A stretch of DNA of 64,000 nucleotides from Blepharisma stoltei ATCC 30299 (lineage: Eukaryota; Protista; Ciliophora). The translations under genes were made by a program, and so were the position numbers. This document shows positions 28,594 through 44,301 of the stretch, piece by piece. Position 1 is the first letter of the stretch, and the number at the start of each line of letters is the position of its first letter. The stretch lies in assembly GCA_965603825.1 (NCBI GenBank), contig CBFDEM010000040.1:558001-622000 (forward strand), written 5' to 3'. Below the pieces are notes generated by a model, which was given only the letters and a program-made list of their open reading frames with translations, did not search any database and had not been told where the DNA came from.

Positions 28594-30672
28594 ATGAATC
28601 TAAACGAACTAGCTGTACCTAAAACTCCTTTTTCTACATATAGAAATAGCCGTTCTCCTTTTATGTCTAATCAAAGCCCAATTCCCAGCAACACCCTTGA
28701 AAAGCCTGCTCGATTAAGTCTTAATAAATCAGGATCTTTATCAAAGCTAGGAGGCAGCATAGTTTCAAGTCCAAGCCCTCGCCCTCGCCCTCAAGATTTA
28801 AACTCTGTAACTATGAGAAAACCAGCCCTCAGTACTTCTCAAAGTATTCAAAATCTTGATAACATCACCATTCTTGATACATTTCAAAGTAACCAGCTTC
28901 CTCCAATTCACGAATCTAATCTTTCAGGCCCAGCATTTAAAGGAGTTCCTACTCACCGAACAATTTTCCTTGACAAGCGTGCATCTCCATTACTAAATGT
29001 AGGCTATGGCGGTGTAGAAAAGCCTCATTTTGACTTAAATCCTTTATATACAAGTACTCATTACAGAGAACGCCAAGTAGCACCAATCGCGCCTCCTCGT
29101 GAAAAAATCAGAGCGATATTTGCCATTTACTATTTAGGAAGAGGCTTTAACGCAGTAACTAATACCTTTGGAAGGCCAAATGGTCTTGGGATCCTCTTAT
29201 CCCCTGACTTATGTTTGACTACTCATTCAGTTCTCCCTGATGAAGAATCTGCTAAAAATTCATATGCACAATTCAGAGATAGCGAAGTTTTTAAATTTGA
29301 CCCTCAAAGGTGTTTTGTGACATCGAGCAATCATGAGTTTACGCTGGTGGCATTCCAATCTCAATCTGGAAATGCTTTACAGTATTTTAAGCCAATTCAC
29401 ATTACAGAGCCATTGTCTCTTCATATTGAAGATGCAGTTGCTTTTTTCCCATATGATGCACATGCTGTAAAAAAAGTAGCAGCAATTGAAAAAAATTATT
29501 TTACTTTTACGTCAGGTAAAAAAGAAGATTTATTGCCGGGGACTGCAGTGTTTTCGTCCACGTGGGTATTCCAAGGGATGTATATAAGGTCAAGTTCTCA
29601 TATAAATGTGGCGAACCGAATGGAACATATTTTGGCTTATTTAGAATCAATATTATCTATATATCCAAATAGCTTATTAGAGCAGTTTTTACATCTAGAT
29701 CATATGGGATTTTTAGAGCAGTTTCATGATAGATATTTATATTATTTTGAATGGCATGGGAGAAATACATGAAGATATGATTTAGATTTAGGGGAATGGG
29801 CACATGTAACCCTCAGAGGTTTAGAAAATTTAGAAAATTCTGCTAAAAATTGGACTTATAATTGAAACTCAAGGCTTGTTTATCTTCCTGATATGTCAAT
29901 TCTAATAATTGGTGGCAAATCCAAGCAAACAGGCGCAGAAACTAATGAAGTTTGGCTATTTTCTCCTGCGAAATACAACACATTGAAGAAAATGACTTCT
30001 ATGATAACTGCAAGAGAAAGCTGTGCTTGTGTGTACATTGAGAACTATGTATATGTTTTTGGGGGAAAACCATATCTTCAAACTTGTGAAAGATTATCTC
30101 TTGCAAGCCAAAGATGGACTGAGATCACTCCTATGTATTATGCAAGATATGAGGCAACAGCTTGCCCAGCATTGGACTCTACACATATTTTTGTATTTGG
30201 AGGAGGACCTATGAATCCATCTGGAAATACAATTGAATCATACTCAATAAAACAAAATCAATGGCAATTACTTCCTGTAACTATGCCTAGACCTCTGGTA
30301 AAGCTTGCTGTTTTTCCCATTACGAATAGAAAAATCGCTATTTTGGGCGGCCATGGATCTCATTGAGTTTATTTAATGTATATTGAAGATTTATTAGATC
30401 AGCAAGGATATACGTATAAAATAGAAGACTGTATGAAACCTTTGGACGAAACATTGGAAACAGTATGGCCTGTAGCCTATTGTAGAAGAAACAATAAACT
30501 ATATATGCTAAATCTCAATCGAAGTGGATATACAGGGGTAACTCCTGGTGTCGTCGAATATCCTTTAGAATATTTCGACATGGGCCAAGCACTAGATCGT
30601 GATATGGATATCTTTTCTACTTCCAAGCCTGGAAGAGTGCAAACTCCTATATCTTTACAAAGATTAATGTAA
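28594..30672 (+). CDS. Trypsin-like (probably inactive) domain + Kelch-repeat protein (692 aa)
   Basis: Three ORFs joined by TGA=Trp. GILLSPDLCLTTHSVL trypsin-like strand; Kelch GG doublets (IIGG, VFGG, VFGGG, ILGG). Confidence 0.8.
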
Positions 30673-30715: not shown

Positions 30716-32351
30716 ATGAGAAAGAAACAAGATCTATTAAATGCATGAGGAGAAGATTTTTGAAAAAGGCATTTTGGAGTGTTTAACTTTTTAAGATGAT
30801 GCTTTTTCAAAAGTATTGATATGCTTGATGATAAATTCAAAAATCCAGAATTAACTATGGTTCTAGCTGGGATATTTTTGCTTAATATAAATTTAAATGT
30901 CCTAGGAAGTGTTACCTTAGGAGAGATCTGCTATCAATATCAAGAAGTAATAAGAAATTCAGGAACTTGTAAGCCAATTACCAGCAGCATTAAATCTGAG
31001 GAATCCATTTTCAGTGTATGTGAACTGATTTTATATTTTGTTCTTTGTTGGGAATCTTAAATCTTCTCCGTTTATATTGACCCTGTGTTGTGCATTGTTT
31101 CATACATATGATACAATTATCAAATTAATTGATACATCTTTTTGCCCACCTCAATCAAATACGGGAAGATTTAATGGGCTTTTACTTTGAGCTGCCTATA
31201 GATCTTTTATGAACTGCTGAGCTTTAATATATTGGCTTGCAATTGTAATTTTGCCTAAAAGACTTAGCAAGAAATTTCAATTAAGTGAGCTACTTAGCAT
31301 AAATCATATATTGTGCAAAATTTTATTCTGAAATAAAGCGAAAAAGACAAAGGAAATTTTAACAACACCTTTCAAAATGCCATTCAGAATTAGAGCATCA
31401 GCTGTGTTCTCTGTTTTCGCAATATTGGTAGACATCTGCGTTGTAAAATATATGCAGTATATGTTACTTTCTTATTCAATTTATTATTTAACTGATGAAT
31501 TAAGATCATATAGAGATTATTTGAAGACTCAGCCAGGAAACGATATATTTATCATCCTGTATTTACAAGAAACACACATTGTTACTGTTTCAGAAGGAAT
31601 CAACTTACTTAGTATTGTAATAAGATGCTTAGAGCCAATTTTCCCATGCATTGCTATATCTCTTATTATCGGATCAATTGTCGCATTATATTCTATAGTC
31701 TTAATGCTTTTTAGATACAAACAATATATGCTCATAATTGTCAATGAGCCAGAAAACAGAGAGTTTTTAAAGCGAATTTGAAGATTCCCAAGTTATTTAG
31801 CTATATTTTTCCCATGTATCTAATATTTAGCTCAATTTGTAATGAATATTTCTTTTCTTCACATAACTTTTTCATTTGTATTATCTAGTTTCCTTTATGC
31901 ATTTACTATATTTTTTATGTTTACAGATGTTTTTGCATATATTATGAGCAAGCCTTTACAGTTTTGGCTGGTTTTAGCCATTTTATTTTGAGGGTAAACT
32001 TAACTCAGATTAATTTATTTTCCTCATCTTGTTGAAAAAGATAGGACAGTAAAGAATAAAATGTATTTTTGCTTATGGGATAGCTGATTTTTATTTGCTG
32101 GATATACGAGCTCAATTATTATTGGCATCTTCAGATATTTTTTCGGAGCAGGGATTGCTTTATTTCTAGGGTTTAGAGCTCACATTAGTAATATGGCACC
32201 TCCATTTGATAGATTGGATGCGCTTTATCGGAGTTTTTACGGATCTATTACTATGCATTGCATTATTCTAGGAATTATGCCAACAAAAGAGGAGTTACTA
32301 GAAATAGCAAATGCCACAAGAGACAAAGGTCCTGCTAAAATAATCCTTTAA
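30716..32351 (+). CDS. STRA6-like multi-pass membrane protein, array copy 1 (524 aa); introns 30947-30962, 31443-31457, 31816-31830, 31994-32008
   Basis: Continuous frame after splicing with TGA=Trp. Motifs FKMPFRIRAS, LEPIFPC..LMLFRYK and VKNKMYF..GIFRY..PFDRLDALYRSFYG. Confidence 0.8.
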
Positions 32352-32633
32352 TTGAATAAATTTTACTTTCTGTTTTATTTTGAAATTAATATTATTGTCT
32401 GGCTATTCTTAATAATTCAATCTAAAATAATTACCAGTACACTCATATTTTAAGTATTTATGGATAGTTAAGAAATCTAAGTAACTATTAAATTTAGAGG
32501 CTATCTGAAAGCACTGTTCGAGCTATCTATAATAACTTAGTGTATTAAAACTTTATCGTCACTATTGTAGAAGAAAGTCTAAAAATTTAGAAATCCAATA
32601 GTCTCAAATTCTTTATAAAAATATTGTAAAGAA

Positions 32634-34269
32634 ATGAGAAATAAGCAAGATCTATTAAATTCGTGAGGAAAAGATTTTTGAAAAAGGCATTTTGGAGTGT
32701 TTAACTTTTTAAGATGATGCTTTTTTAAAAGCATTGACATGATCGATGATAAGTTCAGAAACCCTGAATTAACTATGATCTTGGCTGGAATATTTTTGCA
32801 TAATATAAATTTAAATGCCCTAGGAAGTGTTACCTTAGGAGAGATCTGTTATCAATATCAAGAAGTAATAAGAAATTCAGGAACTTGCAAATCAATTGCC
32901 AGCAGCTTTAAGTTTAAGGAATCCGTTTTCAATGTATGTGAACTGATTTTATATTTTGTTCTTTGTTGGAAATCTTAAATCTTCACCGTTTGCTCTGACT
33001 GTGATATGTGCATTGTTTCATACATATGATACAATTATCAGATTAATTGATACATCTTTTTGCCCACCTCGATCTAATACGGGAAGATTTAATGGACTTT
33101 TTCTTTGAGCTGTTTATAGATCTTTTATGAACTGCTGAGCTTTAGTATATTGGCTTGCAATTATAATGCTGCCTAAAAGACTTAGCAAGAAATTTCAATT
33201 AAGTAAGCTGCTTCGCATAAATCATATTTTGTGCAAAATTCTATTTTGAAATAAAGCCAAAAAGACAAAGAAAATTTTAGCAACACCTTTCAAAATACCT
33301 TTCAGAATTAGAGCATCAGCTGTTTTCTCTGTTTTAGCAACATTAGTTGATATCTGCGTTGTAAAATATATGCAGCATATGCTATTTTCTTATTCAATTA
33401 TATATTTAACAGAAGAGTTAAGAAAACATAGAAATTACTTGAAGACACAGCCAGGAATCGACATATTTATCATGTTTTATTTACAAGAAACACACATTGT
33501 TACTGTTTCAGAGGGAATTGACTTACTTAGTATTGTAATAAGATGCTTAGAACCGATTTTCCCATGCATTGCTATTTCTCTTATTATCGCATCAATTGCT
33601 GCATTATATTCTATAGGCTTAATGCTTTTTAGATACAAACAATATATGCTCATAATTGTCAATGAGCCCGAAAACAGAGAGTTTTTAAAGCGAGTTTGAA
33701 GATTCCCAAGTTATTTAGCTATATTTTTCCCATGTATCTAATATTTAGCTCAATTTGTAATGAATACTGCTTTTCTTCACATAACGTTTTCCTTTGTATT
33801 ATCTAGTTTCCTTTATGCATTTACTATATTTTTTATGTTTACAGATGTTTTTGCATATATTATGAGCAAGCCTTTACAGTTTTGGCTGGTTTTAGCCATT
33901 TTATTTTGAGGGTAAACTTAACTCAGATTAATTTATTTTCCTCATCTTGTTGAAAATGATAGGACAGTAAAGAATAAAATGTATTTTTGCTTATGGGATA
34001 GCTGATTTTTATTTGCTGGATATACGAGCTCAATTATTATTGGCGTCTTCAGATATTTTTTCGGAGCAGGGATTGCTTTATTTCTAGGGTTTAGAGCTCA
34101 CATTAGTAATATGGCACCTCCATTTGATAGATTGGATGCGCTTTATCGGAGTTTTTACGGATCTATTACTATGCATTGCATTATTCTAGGAATTATGCCA
34201 ACAAAAGAGGAGTTACTAGAAATAGCAAATGCCACAAGAGACAAAGGTCCTGCTAAAATAATCCTTTAA
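32634..34269 (+). CDS. STRA6-like protein, copy 2 (524 aa); introns 32865-32880, 33361-33375, 33734-33748, 33912-33926
   Basis: Collinear with copy 1 at a fixed offset of 1918 nt; 3' half nearly identical. Confidence 0.8.
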
Positions 34270-34635
34270 TTGAATAAATTTTACTTTCTGTTGCGAAAAG
34301 AATATAAGTTTTGATTTTGAAATTGATTTTATTTTCTTGTATTCTTAAAATTAAATCTGTAATATAAACTGATATTTTAAGTAGTTTATGGATAGTCAAG
34401 AATCCGAAGTCAACTGTTAAATTTAGAGGCCATCTGGAAGCACTTTTTGTTCTGAATTGTTATCGTTTTTTTGCAGAGGAAAATTTAGGAATCCAATCGT
34501 CTTTAGGGCAAATTATCTCTCCAATACAATATAAATATATAGAACTATATTAAAAGATAGAAAAGCCATATACCTTTACAAATAAGTCAAAATATATTAA
34601 AATATGAAATTCTTAATAAAAAATATTGTAAAGAA

Positions 34636-36277
34636 ATGAGAAATAAGCAAGATCTATTAAATTCGTGAGGAGAAGATTTTTGAAAAAGGCATTTTGGAGT
34701 GTTTAACTTTTTAAGATGATGCTTTTTTAAAAGCATTGATATGCTCGATGATAAGTTCAGAAACCCTGAATTAACCATGATTTTGGCTGGGATATTTTTA
34801 ATTAATATAAATTTAAATGTCCTAGGGAGTGTTAGCCTAGGAGAGCTTTGCTATGAATATCAAGAAGTAATAAGAAAATCAGGAACTTGTAAGTCAAATG
34901 CCAGCAGCTTTAAGTTTGAGAAATCCATTTTCAATGTACGTCAACTGGTTTTATATTTTATACTTTGTTGGAAATCTCAAATCTTCACCGTTTGCGCTGA
35001 CTGTGATATGTGCATCAGCTCATGCATATGATACGATTATTAAACTAATTGATACATCGTTTTGCCCAACTCGTTCGACTGAGTCTGATAGATGATATTC
35101 TCAAATTTTTATCTGAGCTGTCTATAGATCTTTTATGAACTGCTGAGCTTTATTTTATTGGCTTGCTATTGTGATGTTGCCTAAAAGACTTAGCAAAAAA
35201 TTTCAATTAAGTGAACTGATTAATTTGAATAATTCTGCATGCAAAATTCTATTTTGTAAAAGAGCAAAAAAAACAAAGGAAATTTTGACGACTCCTTTCA
35301 AAATACCATTCAGAATTCGAGCATCAGCGTTTTTTTCAATTTTTGCAACAATTGTGGATGCTTGTGGTGTAATTTATATGCAGTATACCTTATTTTCTTA
35401 TTCAATAATTTACTTAACTGATGATTTAAGATCTTACAGGGATTACTTGACAACTCAGCCCGGAAATGACATATTCATCGCGCTATTTTTAAAAGAAACA
35501 CACATTGTTACAGTTTCAGAAGGAATCGATTTTCTCGGCCTTGTAATAAAATGCTTAGAGCCTATTTTTCCATGCATTGTTGTCTCTATTGCTATTGGAT
35601 CAATTTTGACACTGTATTCCATAGGCCTAATGCTTTTTAGATATAAGCAATATATGCTAATAATTGTTAATGAGCCAGAAAACAGAGATTTTTTGAAGCG
35701 AGTTTGACGATTTCCAAGTTATTTAGCTATATTTTTCCCTTGTAACCACTATATAGCTCAATTTGTAACGAACACGCTTTTTCTCCACATGACTTTTTCA
35801 ATCGTGCTATGTAGCTTCATTTATGCATTCACACTATTTTTTATGATTATTGACATTTCTTCATACTTTATGAATAAACCTTTGGAATTTTGACTAGCTC
35901 TAGTGTTTTTATTTTGAGGGTAACATTAATATAGGCTGCTTTATTTTCCCCATCTAGTTGAAAAGGACGGAACAGTGAAAAATAAAAAATATTTTTGTCT
36001 TTGGGATAGTTGATTTTTATTCGCTGGATTTACCAGTTCGGCTCTTATAGGTTTTTTTAGGTACTTTTTCGGGGCAGGGATTGCTTTATTTCTGGGTTTT
36101 AGGGCTCACATTAGTAATATGGCACCTCCATTTGATCGATTGGATGCACTTTATCGAAGTTTTTACGGATCGATTACCCTGTATTGCATAATTCTAGGAA
36201 TTATGCCAACAAATGATGAGTTATTAGAGATAGCAAATGCCGCAAGAGATAAAGGCCCAGCGAAAATAATTTTTTAA
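34636..36277 (+). CDS. STRA6-like protein, copy 3 (526 aa); introns 34867-34882, 35369-35383, 35742-35756, 35920-35934
   Basis: Same exon structure and motifs as copies 1 and 2. Confidence 0.8.
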
Positions 36278-36360
36278 TTATAGTAGCAAAATTTTATTTT
36301 AATAAATATCAAATTTTTTAATTAATATTCAATTAAATGGATTTGTAGTAAAATTAATAA

Positions 36361-37992
36361 ATGAACGTCGAGCCGTTAAATTCCTGAGGAGACTCATTCT
36401 GAAAGCGCCACTTGAAATATCTCTGATGATTAAAATATGTTGTATTCTATAGTTTGGATCTAATAGAAGACAAATTTAAAATCCCAGAATTATCAATTAT
36501 TTTAGGTGCAACTTACATATTGGAGGTCAATATCAAAATTTTAGGATTATATAGTTTTGGCGACTATTGCTATGATTTTAAAGATGTAGTAGCTATTTAG
36601 AGTATTGACAGCACTATTCCGACCAAGTTTAATGCAAATAGTTCTTTTTCTATATTTTCGCATGGGTTTTATTTTTTATTGTTTGCTGGTAATATTAAAT
36701 CTTGCCCAATGTCCTTATCTATTATTTGTGCGTTATATAATATGTATGATGCTTCAGTTAAAGTTATTGACGCATCATTTTGTGATTTTTCTGGAGTAGA
36801 TGAAGTTCACTTTATTTTTACAATTATTCCTGCTTATTCAAGAGCAGTTTTAAGTGTATGGTCAGCTTTTTTATGGTTCATTTTAATTTTTTTTCCGAAG
36901 CGCTATCATAAAAACGCTCAACTTTACGAAATTATTGGAATGATAGTAAAGTGGCTACTTCTAAAACTCTTATGATGCAAAAAGAGAAAGAAGACTAGGA
37001 AAATAATAGAAAAAAAGTTCAAATATCCTTTCAGAATGGTTATATCTTCTTGATTATCCTATGGTTTTGCATTCGCGACAGCTGTTGAAGTAATAATTAT
37101 ATAGTTTTTGATATTTTCCTATCAGCTTGTTTATTTAGTTGGCTGATTAAAATCTGATGAAAGTGGGTTTTATTTTCAAAAAAATGATTATACTTTAGTT
37201 GCTTATAGAAATAATAAATTGCAGAGCACATCTGACGATATTAGCAAAGAAGAAAAAGATAAGATAATTTTGTTCCTGGAATTCTTATACCCTTGTATCA
37301 TAATATCATTTAGTATTGGCCATTCTTTTGTTATTTACTCTATTTTACTAATGCTTTATAAATATAAGCGATTTATGCTAATCATAATTGAAAACAACGA
37401 TCGTGATTTTTTGAGGCAAATATGGAAGTTTTCAAGTCATTCAGCTATGTTTTTTATTCGTAATTATAAATCAGCTCAATTTGTTGTAAATACTTTATTT
37501 TTACAATTTTTCTACTCATTTTTTGTTTTTTTTATGCTCTTCTTAGCTTTGCTCTTTGTTATGTTTATTGATCTTAGAGGATATCTAGCCAGCCAATCTG
37601 TATGATTTTGGATTGGATTTACTCCATTAATTCTAGGGTAGATACTAAGTAGAATATTTTATTTTCCAAGATTAGTGGAAAAGAACAAAAAAGTCAAAAA
37701 TAAATTATATTTGAGCTTTTGAGATGGGTGAAATTTCTTTATAGGGTTTTTAGGGGCTTTTGTTAAAGGTTTAACTCGTTATATCTTAGGATCTTTATTT
37801 GCTTTTTTTATGGGATTCAAAGCTCATAGAAGCGTAATCCCGTATCCTTTTGATAGCTATGATGCACTATATGTCAGCTTTTACGGATGCATAGTGCTTC
37901 ATTGCACTTCGCTTGGAATTTTACCAAGCGAAGAAGAAATGTATGAAATTGATCAAATTCAAGATAATCCTAGGCCATTTTTCAATAGATAA
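36361..37992 (+). CDS. STRA6-like protein, copy 4 (523 aa); introns 36586-36600, 37090-37104, 37460-37474, 37638-37652
   Basis: MNVEPLNS(W)GDSF(W)KRH start. In-frame TAGs fall inside 15-nt introns at positions homologous to the other copies. Confidence 0.8.
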
Positions 37993-38249
37993 TGTATCTT
38001 AAATTAAAATCAAATCAAAATTATTAATAATTTAAAATTTTTCGATTAATTTATTTTAAAATATTAATGTTACGTCAAATTATTTAAATTTCTAATTTTG
38101 GTAGGAGTTAAAAGAAATAATAAATGTCAGATAAAAAATTTAGCTAAAATTATTTTATAATTATGCGAACAAAATATCATTATTTAATATTATCGAAATA
38201 TCTGTAAATTGGATTTGTACCTGCAAATAGGTTTATAGATTTTATAATA

Positions 38250-39884
38250 ATGGAAGTTCAACCATTAAACTCCTGAGGAGACTCGTTCTGGAAGCGCCAC
38301 TTGAAATGCCTCTGGTGATTAAAATATATTGTATTTTATAGTTTTGATCTTATAGAGGATAAGCTTAAAATTCCAGAATTGTCAATTATTTTAGGTGTAA
38401 CTTACATATTAGATGTCAATACCCAAATTTTAGGATTATACAGTTTTGGCGACTATTGTTATGGCTACAATGATGTAATTGCTATTTAGAATGTTGACAG
38501 TACCATTCCGGCACTTTTTAATGCAAACAGTTCCTTTTCAATATTTTCGCACTATTTTTATTTTTTACTATTTGTTGGAAATATTAAATCTTGCCCAACC
38601 TCATTGACTATAATTTGTGCATTATATAATATATATGATGCAGTAGTTAAAGTTATGGACGCATCATTTTGTCCTGTTTCTGCCCAAGATGGCGTCAATT
38701 ATATTTTTACAATTATTCCTGCCTATTCCAGAGCAGCTTTAAGTGTGTGGTCATCTTTTCTATGGCTTGTTTTGTTGATTTTTCCAAAACGCTATTATAA
38801 AATAACCCAGCTTTATGGAATTATTGGGAATATAGTAAAATGGTCACTTATAAAACTCTTATGATGCAAAAAGAGGAAAAAAACTAGGAAAATATTAGAA
38901 AAAAAGTTTAAATATCCGTTGAGAATGACTACAGCAGCGTGAATATCATATACTTTTGCCCTCGCAACGACTTTAGAAGTAATATCTACATAGGTTTTGA
39001 TATATAGCTATCAGTTGATTTATCTAATTGACTGGATGAAGTCTGATGACAGTGGTTTTTATTTTCAAAACACTGAGCGTACTATAATTGCCTTTGGAAA
39101 TCATAATTTGCTAAGCTCTTCTGACGATGACGATAGCAAAGATGCAAAAGATAAAATAATTTTGTTTCTGGAATTCTTATACCCTTCTATCGTCATAGCA
39201 TTTTTTATCGGCCATGCATTCGTTATTTACTCAATTTTATTAATGCTCTACAAATATAAGCGATTTATGATGATTATCATTGAAGACAATGATCGTGCAT
39301 TTTTAAGGCAGATATGAAAATTCTCGAGTCATTCAGCTATGTTTTTTATTCGTAATTGTAAATCAGCTCAATTTGTTGTAAATACTTTATTTTTGCAAGT
39401 TATCTACTCCTTTTTTGTATTTTTTATATTCTTCTTAATTGTACTTTTTGCTGTGCTTATTGATCTCAGAAGCTATCTTGCTAGCCAGTCTCCATGATTT
39501 TGGATTGGATTCATCCCATTGATATTAGGGTAATTACCAAACAGCATATTTTATTTCCCAAGATTAGTAGAAAAGAATAATAAAATCAAAAATAAGCTAT
39601 ATTTGAGCTTTTGGGATGGTTGAAATTTCTTTATAGGGTTTGTAGGGGCTTTTGTTAAAGGTCTTACTCGTTATATCTTAGGATCTCTTTTTGCATTTTT
39701 TGTTGGTTTCAAAGCTCATAGAAGTGTGATGCCATATCCTTTTGACAGCTATGATGCACTCTACAACAGCTTTTACGGTTGCATAGTTCTTCATTGTGTT
39801 TCTCTCGGAATTTTACCTAGCGAAGAAGAGCTTCATGGTATTGATGAAAGTCTAGATAGTTCTAGGCCATTTTTTAATAGATAA
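38250..39884 (+). CDS. STRA6-like protein, copy 5 (524 aa); introns 38475-38489, 38979-38993, 39352-39366, 39530-39544
   Basis: Sister of copy 4; TGG/TGA swaps between the two copies. Confidence 0.8.
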
Positions 39885-39996
39885 TACTTAAACTAAATCA
39901 TAAATTATTCTATTATTTAAAAGATTGATTTATTTTGTCTAAAAGAAATTAGCATTTATTATAAATTATTCTGGATTTATTGCTCGTGTTGAGAAA

Positions 39997-41647
39997 ATGG
40001 AAAATGTAAAACAAAGAGATTTGCTAAATTCCTGAGGAGAAGGATTTTGGAAGCGACATCTAAAAGCTTTTGCCTTTATTAGGCTGCTGATGTTTTATGT
40101 CCTTGATATGCTTGAGGACAAGTTCATAATTCCAGAGCTTTCCATGACTATTGGAGCGCTCTATATTTTAGATCTAAACACCAAAATTCTTGGCACTTAT
40201 GAGCTTCAAGCAATTTGCTATCATTTAAATGAAGTAATCACTATAAAGGATAAAAAGAAAAACATTCCTTGGGTTTTTAATGTTGACAGCTCATTCTCTA
40301 AATACTCTCATTGGTTTTATTTCTTTATATTTGTCGGCAATATTCGCTCATCTCCATATATAATATCCTTGCTTTGTGCATTATACAGCACTTATGACAC
40401 CATTCTTAAATTAATTGATGCATCACTCTGCCCTGCATATAGCCACGAAACTGCAGCTTGGATTACAAATATAATTGTAGGCTATATAAGGGCCATTTTA
40501 AGTATTTGGGCATTTTTCTTGTGAATTGCTGTTTTATTTTTCCCCAAGAAATACAGAAAATCAATACAAATTTACGAAATCTTCGGGAAAATCGCAAAGT
40601 TAATTTTATTGAAAGTCTTATGCTGTAAACGAAGGCAAAAAACCAAGGCAGTATTGAGAATTCCATTTACTTATCCATTTAGAATTATCATATCTGCTTG
40701 AATTTCATATGCATTTGCTTTTGCTGTCATGATATTGGTATATATTATTTAGTATTCGATTGCATTTTACTCATTTTATTATTTAGCTGACTCTTTAGCA
40801 TCTTACAAAGATTATTTAGAAACCCAGGATGGAGATTCGCCTTTCATTATATTTTACTTACAGAGCACTAGTGTGTTCACTGTAAGTGAAGGTATAGCTT
40901 TATTAACAAAAGCAATAACACTTGTGAGGTCTCTTTTTCCCTGTGCTCTTGCAGGAATAATTATTGGTCATTTATTTGTGATTTATTCGATTGGTGTGAT
41001 GCTCTACAGATATAAGCAATATATGCTGATAATCATACATGAAAGTGATAACCGAGAGCTTTTAAAGCGAATTTGACGATTTTCTAGTCACTTAGCAATT
41101 TTCTTTCCAGGTAAAAAGCTATATAGCGCAGTTTGTTATTAATTGTGTATTCCTTCAATTCACATTTTCGTTTTTGGTGTTTAGCATCCTCTTTGGGATT
41201 GCTCTTTACATAAACCTATCAGGCCCAGGCTCATACTTTGCTGGACGAACCATATGATTTTGGCTTAGCTTTTCGCCATTAATATTAGGGTAACTCCTAA
41301 ATAGGACTTTTTATTTCCCTAAGCTAGTTGAAAAAGACAGAAAAGTCAAAAATAAACTTTATTTTTGCTTTTGGGACGGATGATATTTTCTTATAGGCTT
41401 TATAGGCGCTTTTATCAAAGGCATAACAAGGTATATTTTAGGCACAAGTGTTGCTTTATTCTTTGGATTCAGAGCTCATGTAAGCATAATGCCTTCACCA
41501 TTTGATAGATTAGATTCTCTTTATAGGAGCTTTTATGGGTGCATGACACTGCATTGTATTTCTCTTGGAATCATGCTGACACAAAGGGAAATTGAAGAAA
41601 TGTCGATTATTCATAAAGACAAAGGTCCTCCAAAAGTTGTATTTTAA
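39997..41647 (+). CDS. STRA6-like protein, copy 6 (529 aa); introns 40234-40248, 40738-40752, 41111-41126 (16 nt), 41290-41304
   Basis: Same architecture; the frame closes only with the 16-nt intron 3. Confidence 0.8.
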
Positions 41648-41763
41648 TTGGCCGATAATAAACAAATATTGTTTAAGTCTATTATAAACAATTATTCAGA
41701 TTTACTGATTTTTATAAGAATTTTATATTAAAGTAATTTTTTCGAATTCAATAGTTAATTAGC

Positions 41764-44301
41764 TTAAGGGTTTTGAACGAAGCCATTTGCTGTTGAGAAA
41801 AGATTAATAGGGTTCTTTGAGTTCATCAGCATAAATCCTTTAAGTCCAAGTCCCTTAAGAAGCTTCGCTTGAAGTTCAGGCCCAGCTTTAGCCATCGCCA
41901 CAATAGTTTCCTTTCCAATTGCATCCACAATTTCTTGGAATTTCTGAGTTTCAATTGCTGCTAATTCTTTTGCCTTATTAATTTCCAATTCATCTAGCGC
42001 ATTTTGATGGGCGACATCAGCAGCTTGTTTTTCTTTCAGAAGTGACAGCTCAGTCTCATTTTCAATTTTCTTTGCTTCTTCAATCAAAGTTGTCATCTCC
42101 ACATTGCTTTCATTTTGGATTTTTCTTGCCTTGGCTTCTGCAAGTGCTTCACCAGTGGATTTCCCGATTAATTGGACTTCGCTGTTTTTCACCTTCAGCT
42201 CTATAAGTTTGGTTTGTTCCATTTCAGCTTCAATTTCGTCTTGAACCTTCTGAAGATCTAAGCGGCCTTTCGAGTGCTGCTCAGCCTTGGCTGCTTCATG
42301 CTGAGCTCTTGCTTTGCTTGACTCAGTTGTAATTTCTATAGCTTGATTGACTGATTTCTTAAGACTTGCTTTAGTTTTATCATCAGTAGGTTCAACACTT
42401 TGAATATCGACATTGGTCACGACCAAATTATTTGCTGAAAATCTTATTTCAGATTTGACAGCGTCTCCTTTTCTTCCAAAAACGCTAGATTTGATAATAT
42501 CAGCTGATCTTTGATGAAAATCTTCAAAAGTATAAGAAGAAACTGCCCCTCTGACTCTGCTAGCAATTGTTTTGCAAGCGTCACCTACAAAGTCGCGGAC
42601 CATGAAAATCTTATTGCATTCTTCTGCGTTGTTTTTATCGACGTCGAAAAACCAGTTATAAGAAAGCGTCATAGCAAGACTGGCGTGATCGCTGGTTTCT
42701 ACGATGACAATGTCAGTCATAAAGTCAGGGCCAAGCATAAGTGCAATATTTTTAATAAGCCCTTCTTTCTTAGGAACTCCTCCTGACAGGTTTAGAACGG
42801 TAAACTGCTCGTCAGGCTGAAGCATAATTCTATCAGGCCCAAAAACGACTCTGCTTGTCTTTTTCTTGAAATCGTATACCTGCACAGCTGAATTACTTGG
42901 GACTCTAAATGCGACTACTCTGGTTTTATCTCTCTTATAAGGCTTTCCAGTCGACACGTAGACTTGCTTGTCTCCTTCTTTTTTCGCGATTTGGAAGGTT
43001 TCTCCTGTGATTTGTCTGGCAACTAGATCTTCGACTTCAGGTGAGAGCTCCATATCCCACAAGGCTTCATGCGGTTTAAGCATGTAGCTTTCTCCACTTA
43101 CTGCTTTGACTTCTCCAGTTCTGTTATCTCTGACATAAATACCTTCATTTTTGTCGAGGGGAATAGCTTTTCTTCTTTCTAGGACTTCTACTTCAATTGG
43201 AGGAATATAGTCTCTTGGGCCATAAATCATCCACCTTTCGCCTGCCAAATGGTCGTCGCCTTCTGAGTCTTTGAAGTTTTCTCTAGCTTTGAGAAGCAGA
43301 GCTTCGTCGTCTGCAAGGACGTAGACGTCTTGGATCCCTTTTTCTAAACTTTCAAAAGGCTTGAGGAAGAAGGTGCATTCTCCTTTTCTTAAAACTTTTT
43401 TACCGAACTGGTTTTTCCCGTTTTCGACAGGGTCGAGGATGTAACAGTATTGTCTGTTATTGAGGACAATAGAGTTGACGGTTCCTACAACGACTTCGTT
43501 GACGTCAGGGATGTGAGTGTCGGTTTCTTTTTGAGTCACCAACCATTCTTCTCCGGCCAATCTTTTGACTCCATACACATCAGTGAAGTTTCTTATAGCC
43601 CTTAGCTGAAGTCCTTTCTTTTCAGTCAATACAATTGCTTTGACTTCTTCAACGACGTCTTCATTGACACCTGGCAGATAATCTCCAGTTTCTCTGATAA
43701 GCCATTCTTCACCTGCTTCTCTGGTGTTCCCGTACTTATCAACTGTAGATCTTTTAGCTCTAATTTTGAGTGCTGCGTTTGGCTTGATAGTCAAAGACTT
43801 GACTTGCTCAACAATGTCACATTCAATCTTAGGAACATAGGTTCCAGGCCCATAATGAAGCCATTCATCACCTGCAGAACGTCTTTCTCCAGTGCTGTCG
43901 ATGAAATCTCTTGTAGCCCTTAATTTATAAGCGCAGTTTGGCTGAATTACAGGGATTTTTTGGATGTCTTGTTCTATTTCTTCCCATGGATAAAGTGGAA
44001 AAGGCTCAGGGTGGGTTTCTGATGTGCGGACTTCACGGTCTCCATGCTTAACTCTTGCCATTCCATTGTCGTCAAAAGAAACTCTTCTATGCTCGTCCTT
44101 GATAACTGGGTTTCTGATTATACAGTAGTTTCTGGGAGGAATTTGGATCATTTTCATAATCTTTCCACCAAGGCCAATTCGTTCGTGATCTTTCAAGACG
44201 TAAGTGAGAGGACCTTCTGTTACTCTTGTAATGTTGGTATTACAGTCGAGGATGTGAACGTATTGGAACGGTGGGATTCTAATCAAGCTTTGCTCTTCCA
44301 T
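41764..44301 (-). CDS. MVP: Major vault protein
   Basis: IRIPPFQYVHILD start, vault repeats (AGEEWL), VVFGP, LGPDFMTD..ETSDHA, DFVGDACK shoulder domain, AGPELQAKLL..LGL cap helix. Confidence 0.97.
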   Translation of the reverse strand: MEEQSLIRIPPFQYVHILDCNTNITRVTEGPLTYVLKDHERIGLGGKIMKMIQIPPRNYCIIRNPVIKDEHRRVSFDDNGMARVKHGDREVRTSETHPEPFPLYPWEEIEQDIQKIPVIQPNCAYKLRATRDFIDSTGERRSAGDEWLHYGPGTYVPKIECDIVEQVKSLTIKPNAALKIRAKRSTVDKYGNTREAGEEWLIRETGDYLPGVNEDVVEEVKAIVLTEKKGLQLRAIRNFTDVYGVKRLAGEEWLVTQKETDTHIPDVNEVVVGTVNSIVLNNRQYCYILDPVENGKNQFGKKVLRKGECTFFLKPFESLEKGIQDVYVLADDEALLLKARENFKDSEGDDHLAGERWMIYGPRDYIPPIEVEVLERRKAIPLDKNEGIYVRDNRTGEVKAVSGESYMLKPHEALWDMELSPEVEDLVARQITGETFQIAKKEGDKQVYVSTGKPYKRDKTRVVAFRVPSNSAVQVYDFKKKTSRVVFGPDRIMLQPDEQFTVLNLSGGVPKKEGLIKNIALMLGPDFMTDIVIVETSDHASLAMTLSYNWFFDVDKNNAEECNKIFMVRDFVGDACKTIASRVRGAVSSYTFEDFHQRSADIIKSSVFGRKGDAVKSEIRFSANNLVVTNVDIQSVEPTDDKTKASLKKSVNQAIEITTESSKARAQHEAAKAEQHSKGRLDLQKVQDEIEAEMEQTKLIELKVKNSEVQLIGKSTGEALAEAKARKIQNESNVEMTTLIEEAKKIENETELSLLKEKQAADVAHQNALDELEINKAKELAAIETQKFQEIVDAIGKETIVAMAKAGPELQAKLLKGLGLKGFMLMNSKNPINLFSTANGFVQNP

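Follow-up and report, generated by a model that had tools for sequence, protein, structure and literature searches.

The window analysed here is a 64,000-nt stretch of the heterotrich ciliate Blepharisma stoltei genome (positions 558001-622000 of contig C40 in a 41.46-Mb, 64-contig assembly). Between positions 30716 and 41647 of its forward strand lies a tandem array of six collinear genes, each encoding a multi-pass membrane protein of 523-529 amino acids (aa), and we consider these proteins likely to be remote homologues of STRA6, the animal vitamin-A receptor of the retinol-binding protein (RBP) receptor family. A preliminary description of the locus, made from the letters alone, had announced six intact genes of ~525 aa with multiple transmembrane (TM) helices, hidden from view as full open reading frames (ORFs) by TGA codons read as Trp and by four shared micro-introns. 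Both claims proved correct: splicing and translation with TGA as Trp open all six frames, the limits of the array are exactly those first given, and about nine hydrophobic helices per protein are predicted from hydropathy and AlphaFold2 secondary structure. The genes are laid out as follows.

30716..32351, forward strand: g1, 524 aa in five exons; introns 30947-30962, 31443-31457, 31816-31830 and 31994-32008; ten TGA codons read as Trp
32634..34269, forward strand: g2, 524 aa; introns 32865-32880, 33361-33375, 33734-33748 and 33912-33926; identical to public protein P0001
34636..36277, forward strand: g3, 526 aa; introns 34867-34882, 35369-35383, 35742-35756 and 35920-35934; identical to public protein P0019
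36361..37992, forward strand: g4, 523 aa; introns 36586-36600, 37090-37104, 37460-37474 and 37638-37652
38250..39884, forward strand: g5, 524 aa; introns 38475-38489, 38979-38993, 39352-39366 and 39530-39544
39997..41647, forward strand: g6, 529 aa; introns 40234-40248, 40738-40752, 41111-41126 and 41290-41304; identical to public protein P0020

The array is AT-rich (GC content ~30%) and its genes are separated by spacers of 83-366 nt. Translation of the region with the bacterial code (table 11) yields ORF fragments only; with TGA as Trp, the forward strand shows long open stretches. A search for introns of the form GTA..AG, 15-17 nt in length, gave exactly one consistent five-exon model per gene, with four introns of 15-16 nt at positions that are homologous in all six genes. 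The resulting frames contain 6-10 TGA codons each and not a single TAA or TAG. Nine columns of the alignment of the six paralogues show TGA in one copy and TGG in another, and eight TGA-containing columns encode Trp in every copy. The published B. stoltei genome comprises 64 telomere-to-telomere contigs, uses UGA for Trp and has introns mostly of 15 and 16 bp (PMC9942806). The g2, g3 and g6 models match the public proteins letter for letter; the public g5 protein, P0002, begins at Met131 of the 524-aa model.

Conservation along the proteins is markedly uneven. Of the 533 alignment columns, 133 are invariant; the last exon and the helix at about residues 320-380 are the most conserved, whereas conservation is lowest in columns 141-160 and 255-300, the latter with 0-2 invariant positions per 20 columns, as against 9-10 in the C-terminal motifs. 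In g2, the most variable loop and the best conserved part map to the following segments.

33376..33560, forward strand: start of g2 exon 3, the most variable loop (approximately P0001 residues 246-297, alignment columns 255-300), with homologous stretches in the other five genes
33927..34269, forward strand: g2 exon 5, where conservation is highest, carrying V-K-N-K ... W-D ... G-F-R-A-H ... P-F-D-x-x-D-x-L-Y-x-S-F-Y-G

The family to which the array belongs is small. A profile built from exon 5 (A1) recovered the whole family, 18 relatives among 1.84 billion representative proteins; a word-indexed homologue search yielded only the array's own proteins, whether the query was one protein or an alignment. 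The 18 relatives comprise the array's own proteins, a seventh B. stoltei paralogue (P0003), two hypothetical proteins of Stentor coeruleus and unnamed environmental sequences. P0003 is unlinked to the array (contig C53, 331974-333593, forward strand; 529 aa, 39% identity to g2), and the reading frame of its gene crosses 11 TGA codons as well as three intron stops. A search of the B. stoltei genome with the family alignment gave these seven genes and no more. SteCoe_25016 and SteCoe_38291 from S. coeruleus and the environmental P0017/P0022, P0009 and P0014 are true sequence relatives, sharing with the array proteins the exon-5 motifs N-K/R-x-Y, W-D, G-F/Y-R and D-x-L-Y-x-S/T-F. They occur in single or few copies, some as truncated models, at 21-34% identity to g2, and none has been named. 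P0022 (452 aa) is encoded by one uninterrupted ORF (L011, 8001-9359) on a contig from an activated-sludge metagenome, closely surrounded by other eukaryotic genes (Enkurin, SHIPPO repeat, DENN, bZIP and Kelch), of which Enkurin and SHIPPO repeat belong to families that we take to be ciliary. This compact eukaryotic neighbourhood indicates that P0022 derives from a protist with a compact genome.

Support for the link to STRA6 came mainly from language-model features and from structure. When P0001, the g2 protein, was used in an ESM-feature search, the top clusters bore the name 'stimulated by retinoic acid gene 6 protein-like' and were 98-100% PF14752, the Pfam RBP_receptor family, with a score of 0.94 and 217 of 256 features shared; PF14752 clusters accounted for 19 of the 30 matches, and the ten best family-bearing matches all agreed on PF14752. 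Among the 18 family proteins, the sole Pfam match was that of the environmental fragment P0014, whose exon-5-equivalent region aligns to positions 457-526 of the 605 in PF14752 at 17.6 bits (E 0.0017), below the gathering cut-off of 25 bits.

Structural searches led to the same family. With a whole-protein AlphaFold2 model as query, the one chain that Foldseek retrieved within the E limit of 0.001 was 5sy1_A of the structure of zebrafish STRA6 with calmodulin (5SY1; E 3.1e-4, probability 1.00; next match at E 0.41), in an alignment of 555 columns that includes the N-terminal region at a template-modelling score (TM-score) of 0.28, and VIA-align gave the STRA6 chain a Z of 12.7, compared with 8.2 for the next. 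Residues 1-190 are poorly modelled in this whole-protein model, and in that region VIA matched only four-helix membrane bundles of a generic kind, at Z 7-8. A model of the C-terminal domain (338 residues, from a 25-row alignment) reached a predicted local distance difference test score (pLDDT) of 79.6 and a predicted template-modelling score (pTM) of 0.67. For this domain Foldseek again placed 5sy1_A alone on top (E 1.2e-3, against 0.22 for the next match; probability 1.00, TM-score 0.39). In an exhaustive VIA comparison with 48,161 representative chains, 5sy1_B stood alone at Z 8 or more, with a Z of 14.3 over 284 of the 338 residues (root-mean-square deviation, rmsd, 8.1), followed 6 Z units lower by a BAR domain (8.0). 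The alignment pairs model residues 8-314 with 5sy1_B residues 234-558, covering 84% of the domain, and it is collinear with the match between P0014 and PF14752, the conserved C-terminal motifs of the ciliate proteins falling at TM9 and just after it. The Foldseek match to zebrafish STRA6 was obtained on two models, with 5SY1 the lone top match of two aligners. In the domain model the chain passes from TM6 through an outer loop that includes a small hairpin to TM7, then by way of a short cytosolic helix to TM8 and of a short re-entrant helix to TM9, which is followed by an amphipathic C-terminal helix; the Lys/Arg-rich stretches around residues 176-222 and 326-348 lie on what we take to be the cytosolic side.

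Collectively, these results support a link to STRA6 by remote homology, not by profile membership, and the models indicate that the C-terminal 340 residues, which contain juxtamembrane helices in addition to five long hydrophobic ones, adopt a fold like that of zebrafish STRA6 in its TM6-TM9/intramembrane-helix domain. That the array proteins are truly homologous to STRA6 appears to us likely. The best explanation for the array itself, and one of good probability, is that a small protist branch of the STRA6/RBP-receptor superfamily underwent lineage-specific tandem expansion in B. stoltei, a heterotrich; its products would act as a stripped-down STRA6. By analogy with STRA6, which is a dimer, they would be membrane proteins whose lipophilic cleft opens onto the bilayer, and each would serve as a passive gate without energy input. 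The cleft would pass a hydrophobic small molecule from an outside donor to the membrane, the cell or an intracellular acceptor, and gating would proceed without the vertebrate add-ons, namely the calmodulin tail and the lipocalin carrier.

What such a gate would carry can be narrowed to some extent. A six-frame, intron-blind scan of the 41.5-Mb genome gave no match to the lipocalin families PF00061 and PF08212 at E 0.01 or better, and no match to an RPE65-type carotenoid oxygenase was found in the genome; the positive controls were detected in each search. Therefore, neither an RBP-type donor nor a retinoid supply is evident, and the suggestion that uptake or sensing by these proteins is RBP-independent fits the lipocalin result. 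Among the ligands first proposed (retinoid, sterol or pigment), a retinoid becomes the least likely, since there is no carotenoid-oxygenase match; our guesses are a sterol, another lipid or a hypericin-like pigment. The array proteins probably handle a hydrophobic ligand in a STRA6-like manner. Among the paralogues, divergence is greatest in the loop that joins the TM6 and TM7 equivalents, and this loop, which occupies the position at which STRA6 binds RBP, divides them into three lineages (g1-g3, g4-g5 and g6). This pattern suggests that the paralogues differ in ligand or partner. A bolder version, which we regard as quite unlikely, would have the array preserve the ancestral, carrier-independent STRA6 fold, serving pigmented heterotrichs (Blepharisma and Stentor) as gates or sensors for hypericin-like pigments (blepharismin and stentorin), prey sterols or mating gamones, with the hypervariable TM6-TM7 loop setting specificity.

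Several observations weigh against kinship with STRA6 and a STRA6-like function. At E up to 10, Pfam gave no match for P0001, P0002, P0003, P0008, P0017 or ten TGA-free exon pieces, and neither phmmer nor profile searches of the Protein Data Bank (PDB) sequences with P0001, A3, A4 and P0014 retrieved any match, the STRA6 chain included. A search of all six genomic reading frames with PF14752 also returned nothing, a result that is uninformative given that the controls were equally silent. The whole-protein model, built from a 10-sequence alignment, is poor (pLDDT 63, pTM 0.47); an Atlas shape search with that model gave noise only, and nothing usable came from querying the Atlas with the N-terminal 215 residues. 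TM-scores to 5SY1 are low (0.26-0.39), rmsd values are high (8-13 Å), and some all-helical models reach a Z of ~14 by arrangement alone. Dimerization, the lipophilic cleft and transport are all inferred from STRA6, and the lipocalin scan, as noted, was blind to introns. The resemblance proposed in the preliminary description, which also looked to the Pfam RBP_receptor profile, is consequently upheld in part: the fold, the ESM features and the weak collinear match of P0014 speak for it, but the array proteins themselves match neither the profile nor a PDB sequence.

These same points lend some credit to the strongest competing explanation, under which the proteins form a protist-specific multi-pass family without STRA6 ancestry and the likeness arises because long hydrophobic helices have a limited choice of packing arrangements. 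It would account for the missing sequence and profile matches, for TM-scores below 0.4, and for the size of a family with only 18 relatives in 1.84 billion proteins, none of them annotated; moreover, unrelated helical models can attain the Z of the STRA6 match, and 4-10% of shuffled proteins score 0.9 or more in ESM features. What it does not readily accommodate is that ESM features, Foldseek 3Di, VIA and the weak Pfam match, four routes that are not fully independent of one another, arrive at one family out of thousands, and that the alignments are collinear over 84% of the domain, with STRA6 6 Z units above the next chain. On balance, we consider packing without kinship unlikely.

Relationships among the copies bear on whether the array as a whole is maintained. 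Pairwise identity is 91% for g1/g2, 80% for g1/g3 and 79% for g4/g5, falling to 37% for g1/g4, with g6 at 45-49% to all others, and a maximum-likelihood tree resolves the groups (g1,g2,g3) and (g6,(g4,g5)). Nei-Gojobori ratios of nonsynonymous to synonymous substitution rates (dN/dS) are 0.23 for g1/g2, 0.15 for g1/g3 and 0.19 for g4/g5, indicative of purifying selection.

Transcripts were sought for g4-g6, by placing RNA contigs on 5,701 letters (36300-42000), and about half of the sampled words of this interval were present in four runs of one 2022 study. The contigs lack exactly the predicted 15- or 16-nt introns at all four sites of g6 and at introns 3 and 4 of g5 and hence derive from spliced RNA; at least two genes of the array are transcribed and spliced. 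For g6, a single 1612-nt RNA contig spans 39983-41655 with 61 letters missing, which are the four introns. All four runs lack introns 2 and 4 of this gene, and three of them lack intron 3. Intron 1 (40234-40248) is removed in run X3, whereas in run X1 the site is covered but the deletion is absent; as this intron ends in AAG, not TAG, its retention would insert five residues in frame, and its splicing may therefore be optional. For g5, one RNA contig lacks introns 3 and 4, and none spans intron 2. Intron 1 (38475-38489), predicted to be spliced like the others, is kept in the sole contig that spans it (38255-38722), leaving an in-frame TAG; accordingly, the public g5 annotation begins at Met131. 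With 15 differences from the window, the contig in question may represent the allele of the other mating-type strain. Only short RNA contigs with small word depth were found for g4, contig depth being unfit for ranking expression.

It could be argued from the transcript picture that some copies are decaying duplicates and that g6, perhaps with g5, is alone functional, given the short, shallow contigs of g4, the retained g5 intron with its in-frame stop, and the truncated public g5 model. We find this distinctly improbable: all six frames are intact and their introns conserved, the dN/dS of 0.15-0.23 in young pairs reflects continuing purifying selection, and the contig depth behind the g4 argument cannot rank expression. 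Still less credible, and in our judgement very improbable indeed, is a chemoreceptor or ligand-gated channel of the insect odorant/gustatory-receptor kind (7TM ion channel) with the array as a diversifying receptor repertoire, for which the automatic UniRef name 'Odorant receptor' on P0001, P0019 and P0020 and the combination of tandem expansion with a hypervariable outer loop, typical of such repertoires, might be cited, but which is at odds with the lack of any match to Pfam 7tm_6 or related families at E up to 10, the absence of odorant receptor (OR), Orco and gustatory receptor (GR) chains from the top 50 of all four structure searches, and the prediction of about nine, not seven, hydrophobic helices.

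Immediately upstream of the array is a gene for a Kelch-repeat protein (29893-30366, forward strand). Downstream, on the reverse strand, lies the gene for the major vault protein (41764-44301), an 845-aa ORF without TGA interruption that encodes Vault repeats and the shoulder domain (E 1e-67); RNA contig word depth over this gene is 300-600, far above that over the array. The neighbouring genes offer no hint to the function of the array.

STRA6 has mostly been treated as a vertebrate receptor for retinol-binding protein, and a full-text literature search found no paper tying it to ciliates. If the array is indeed a ciliate branch of the superfamily, with neither calmodulin tail nor lipocalin partner, the membrane core would be ancient and once carrier-independent, and the fold more general than its vertebrate role. 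Such a branch would provide a simpler system for asking what the STRA6 membrane core does, and Stentor, one of the genera with relatives of the array proteins, is amenable to RNA interference (RNAi). It would also correct the labels 'Odorant receptor' and 'uncharacterized' currently attached to these proteins.

Compared with STRA6 itself (5SY1; PF14752; TCDB 2.A.90), the array proteins have a membrane part of similar size with about nine hydrophobic helices, and P0001 residues ~194-500 superpose collinearly on STRA6 residues 234-558, from TM6 to past TM9. Both also have an outer loop between the TM6 and TM7 equivalents, variable in the array proteins and, by its inferred position, at the place of RBP binding in STRA6. 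The differences are equally clear: identity is ~10-15%, below the Pfam cut-off, the N-terminal domain is not demonstrably like that of STRA6, and the six-gene tandem arrangement in a protist is unlike STRA6. The calmodulin-binding helices of STRA6 reportedly lie in the cytosolic tail, past chain residue 558. The alignment stops at that residue of the chain and at residue 500 of the 524 in P0001 (model residue 314), and PF14752 positions 527-605 have no counterpart in the P0014 match. Because only ~24 residues follow the last aligned one, a long C-terminal calmodulin-binding tail cannot, according to the model, be present in the array proteins. The alignment ranges thus agree with the earlier proposal that most of this tail is absent; the copies do end soon after the D-x-x-Y motif, as had been stated, but at ~39-40 aa past D-x-L-Y and not at ~30. 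A second point of comparison is the STRA6-like/RBPR2 type, whose name is borne by the top ESM-feature clusters for P0001. In amphioxus only the STRA6L type was found, and STRA6L may predate RBP-based transport (PMC3184775). RBPR2 retains RBP4 binding and possesses a soluble ~75-aa C-terminal domain (PMC11050646), whereas the ciliate proteins extend ~25-40 aa past the last helix motif.

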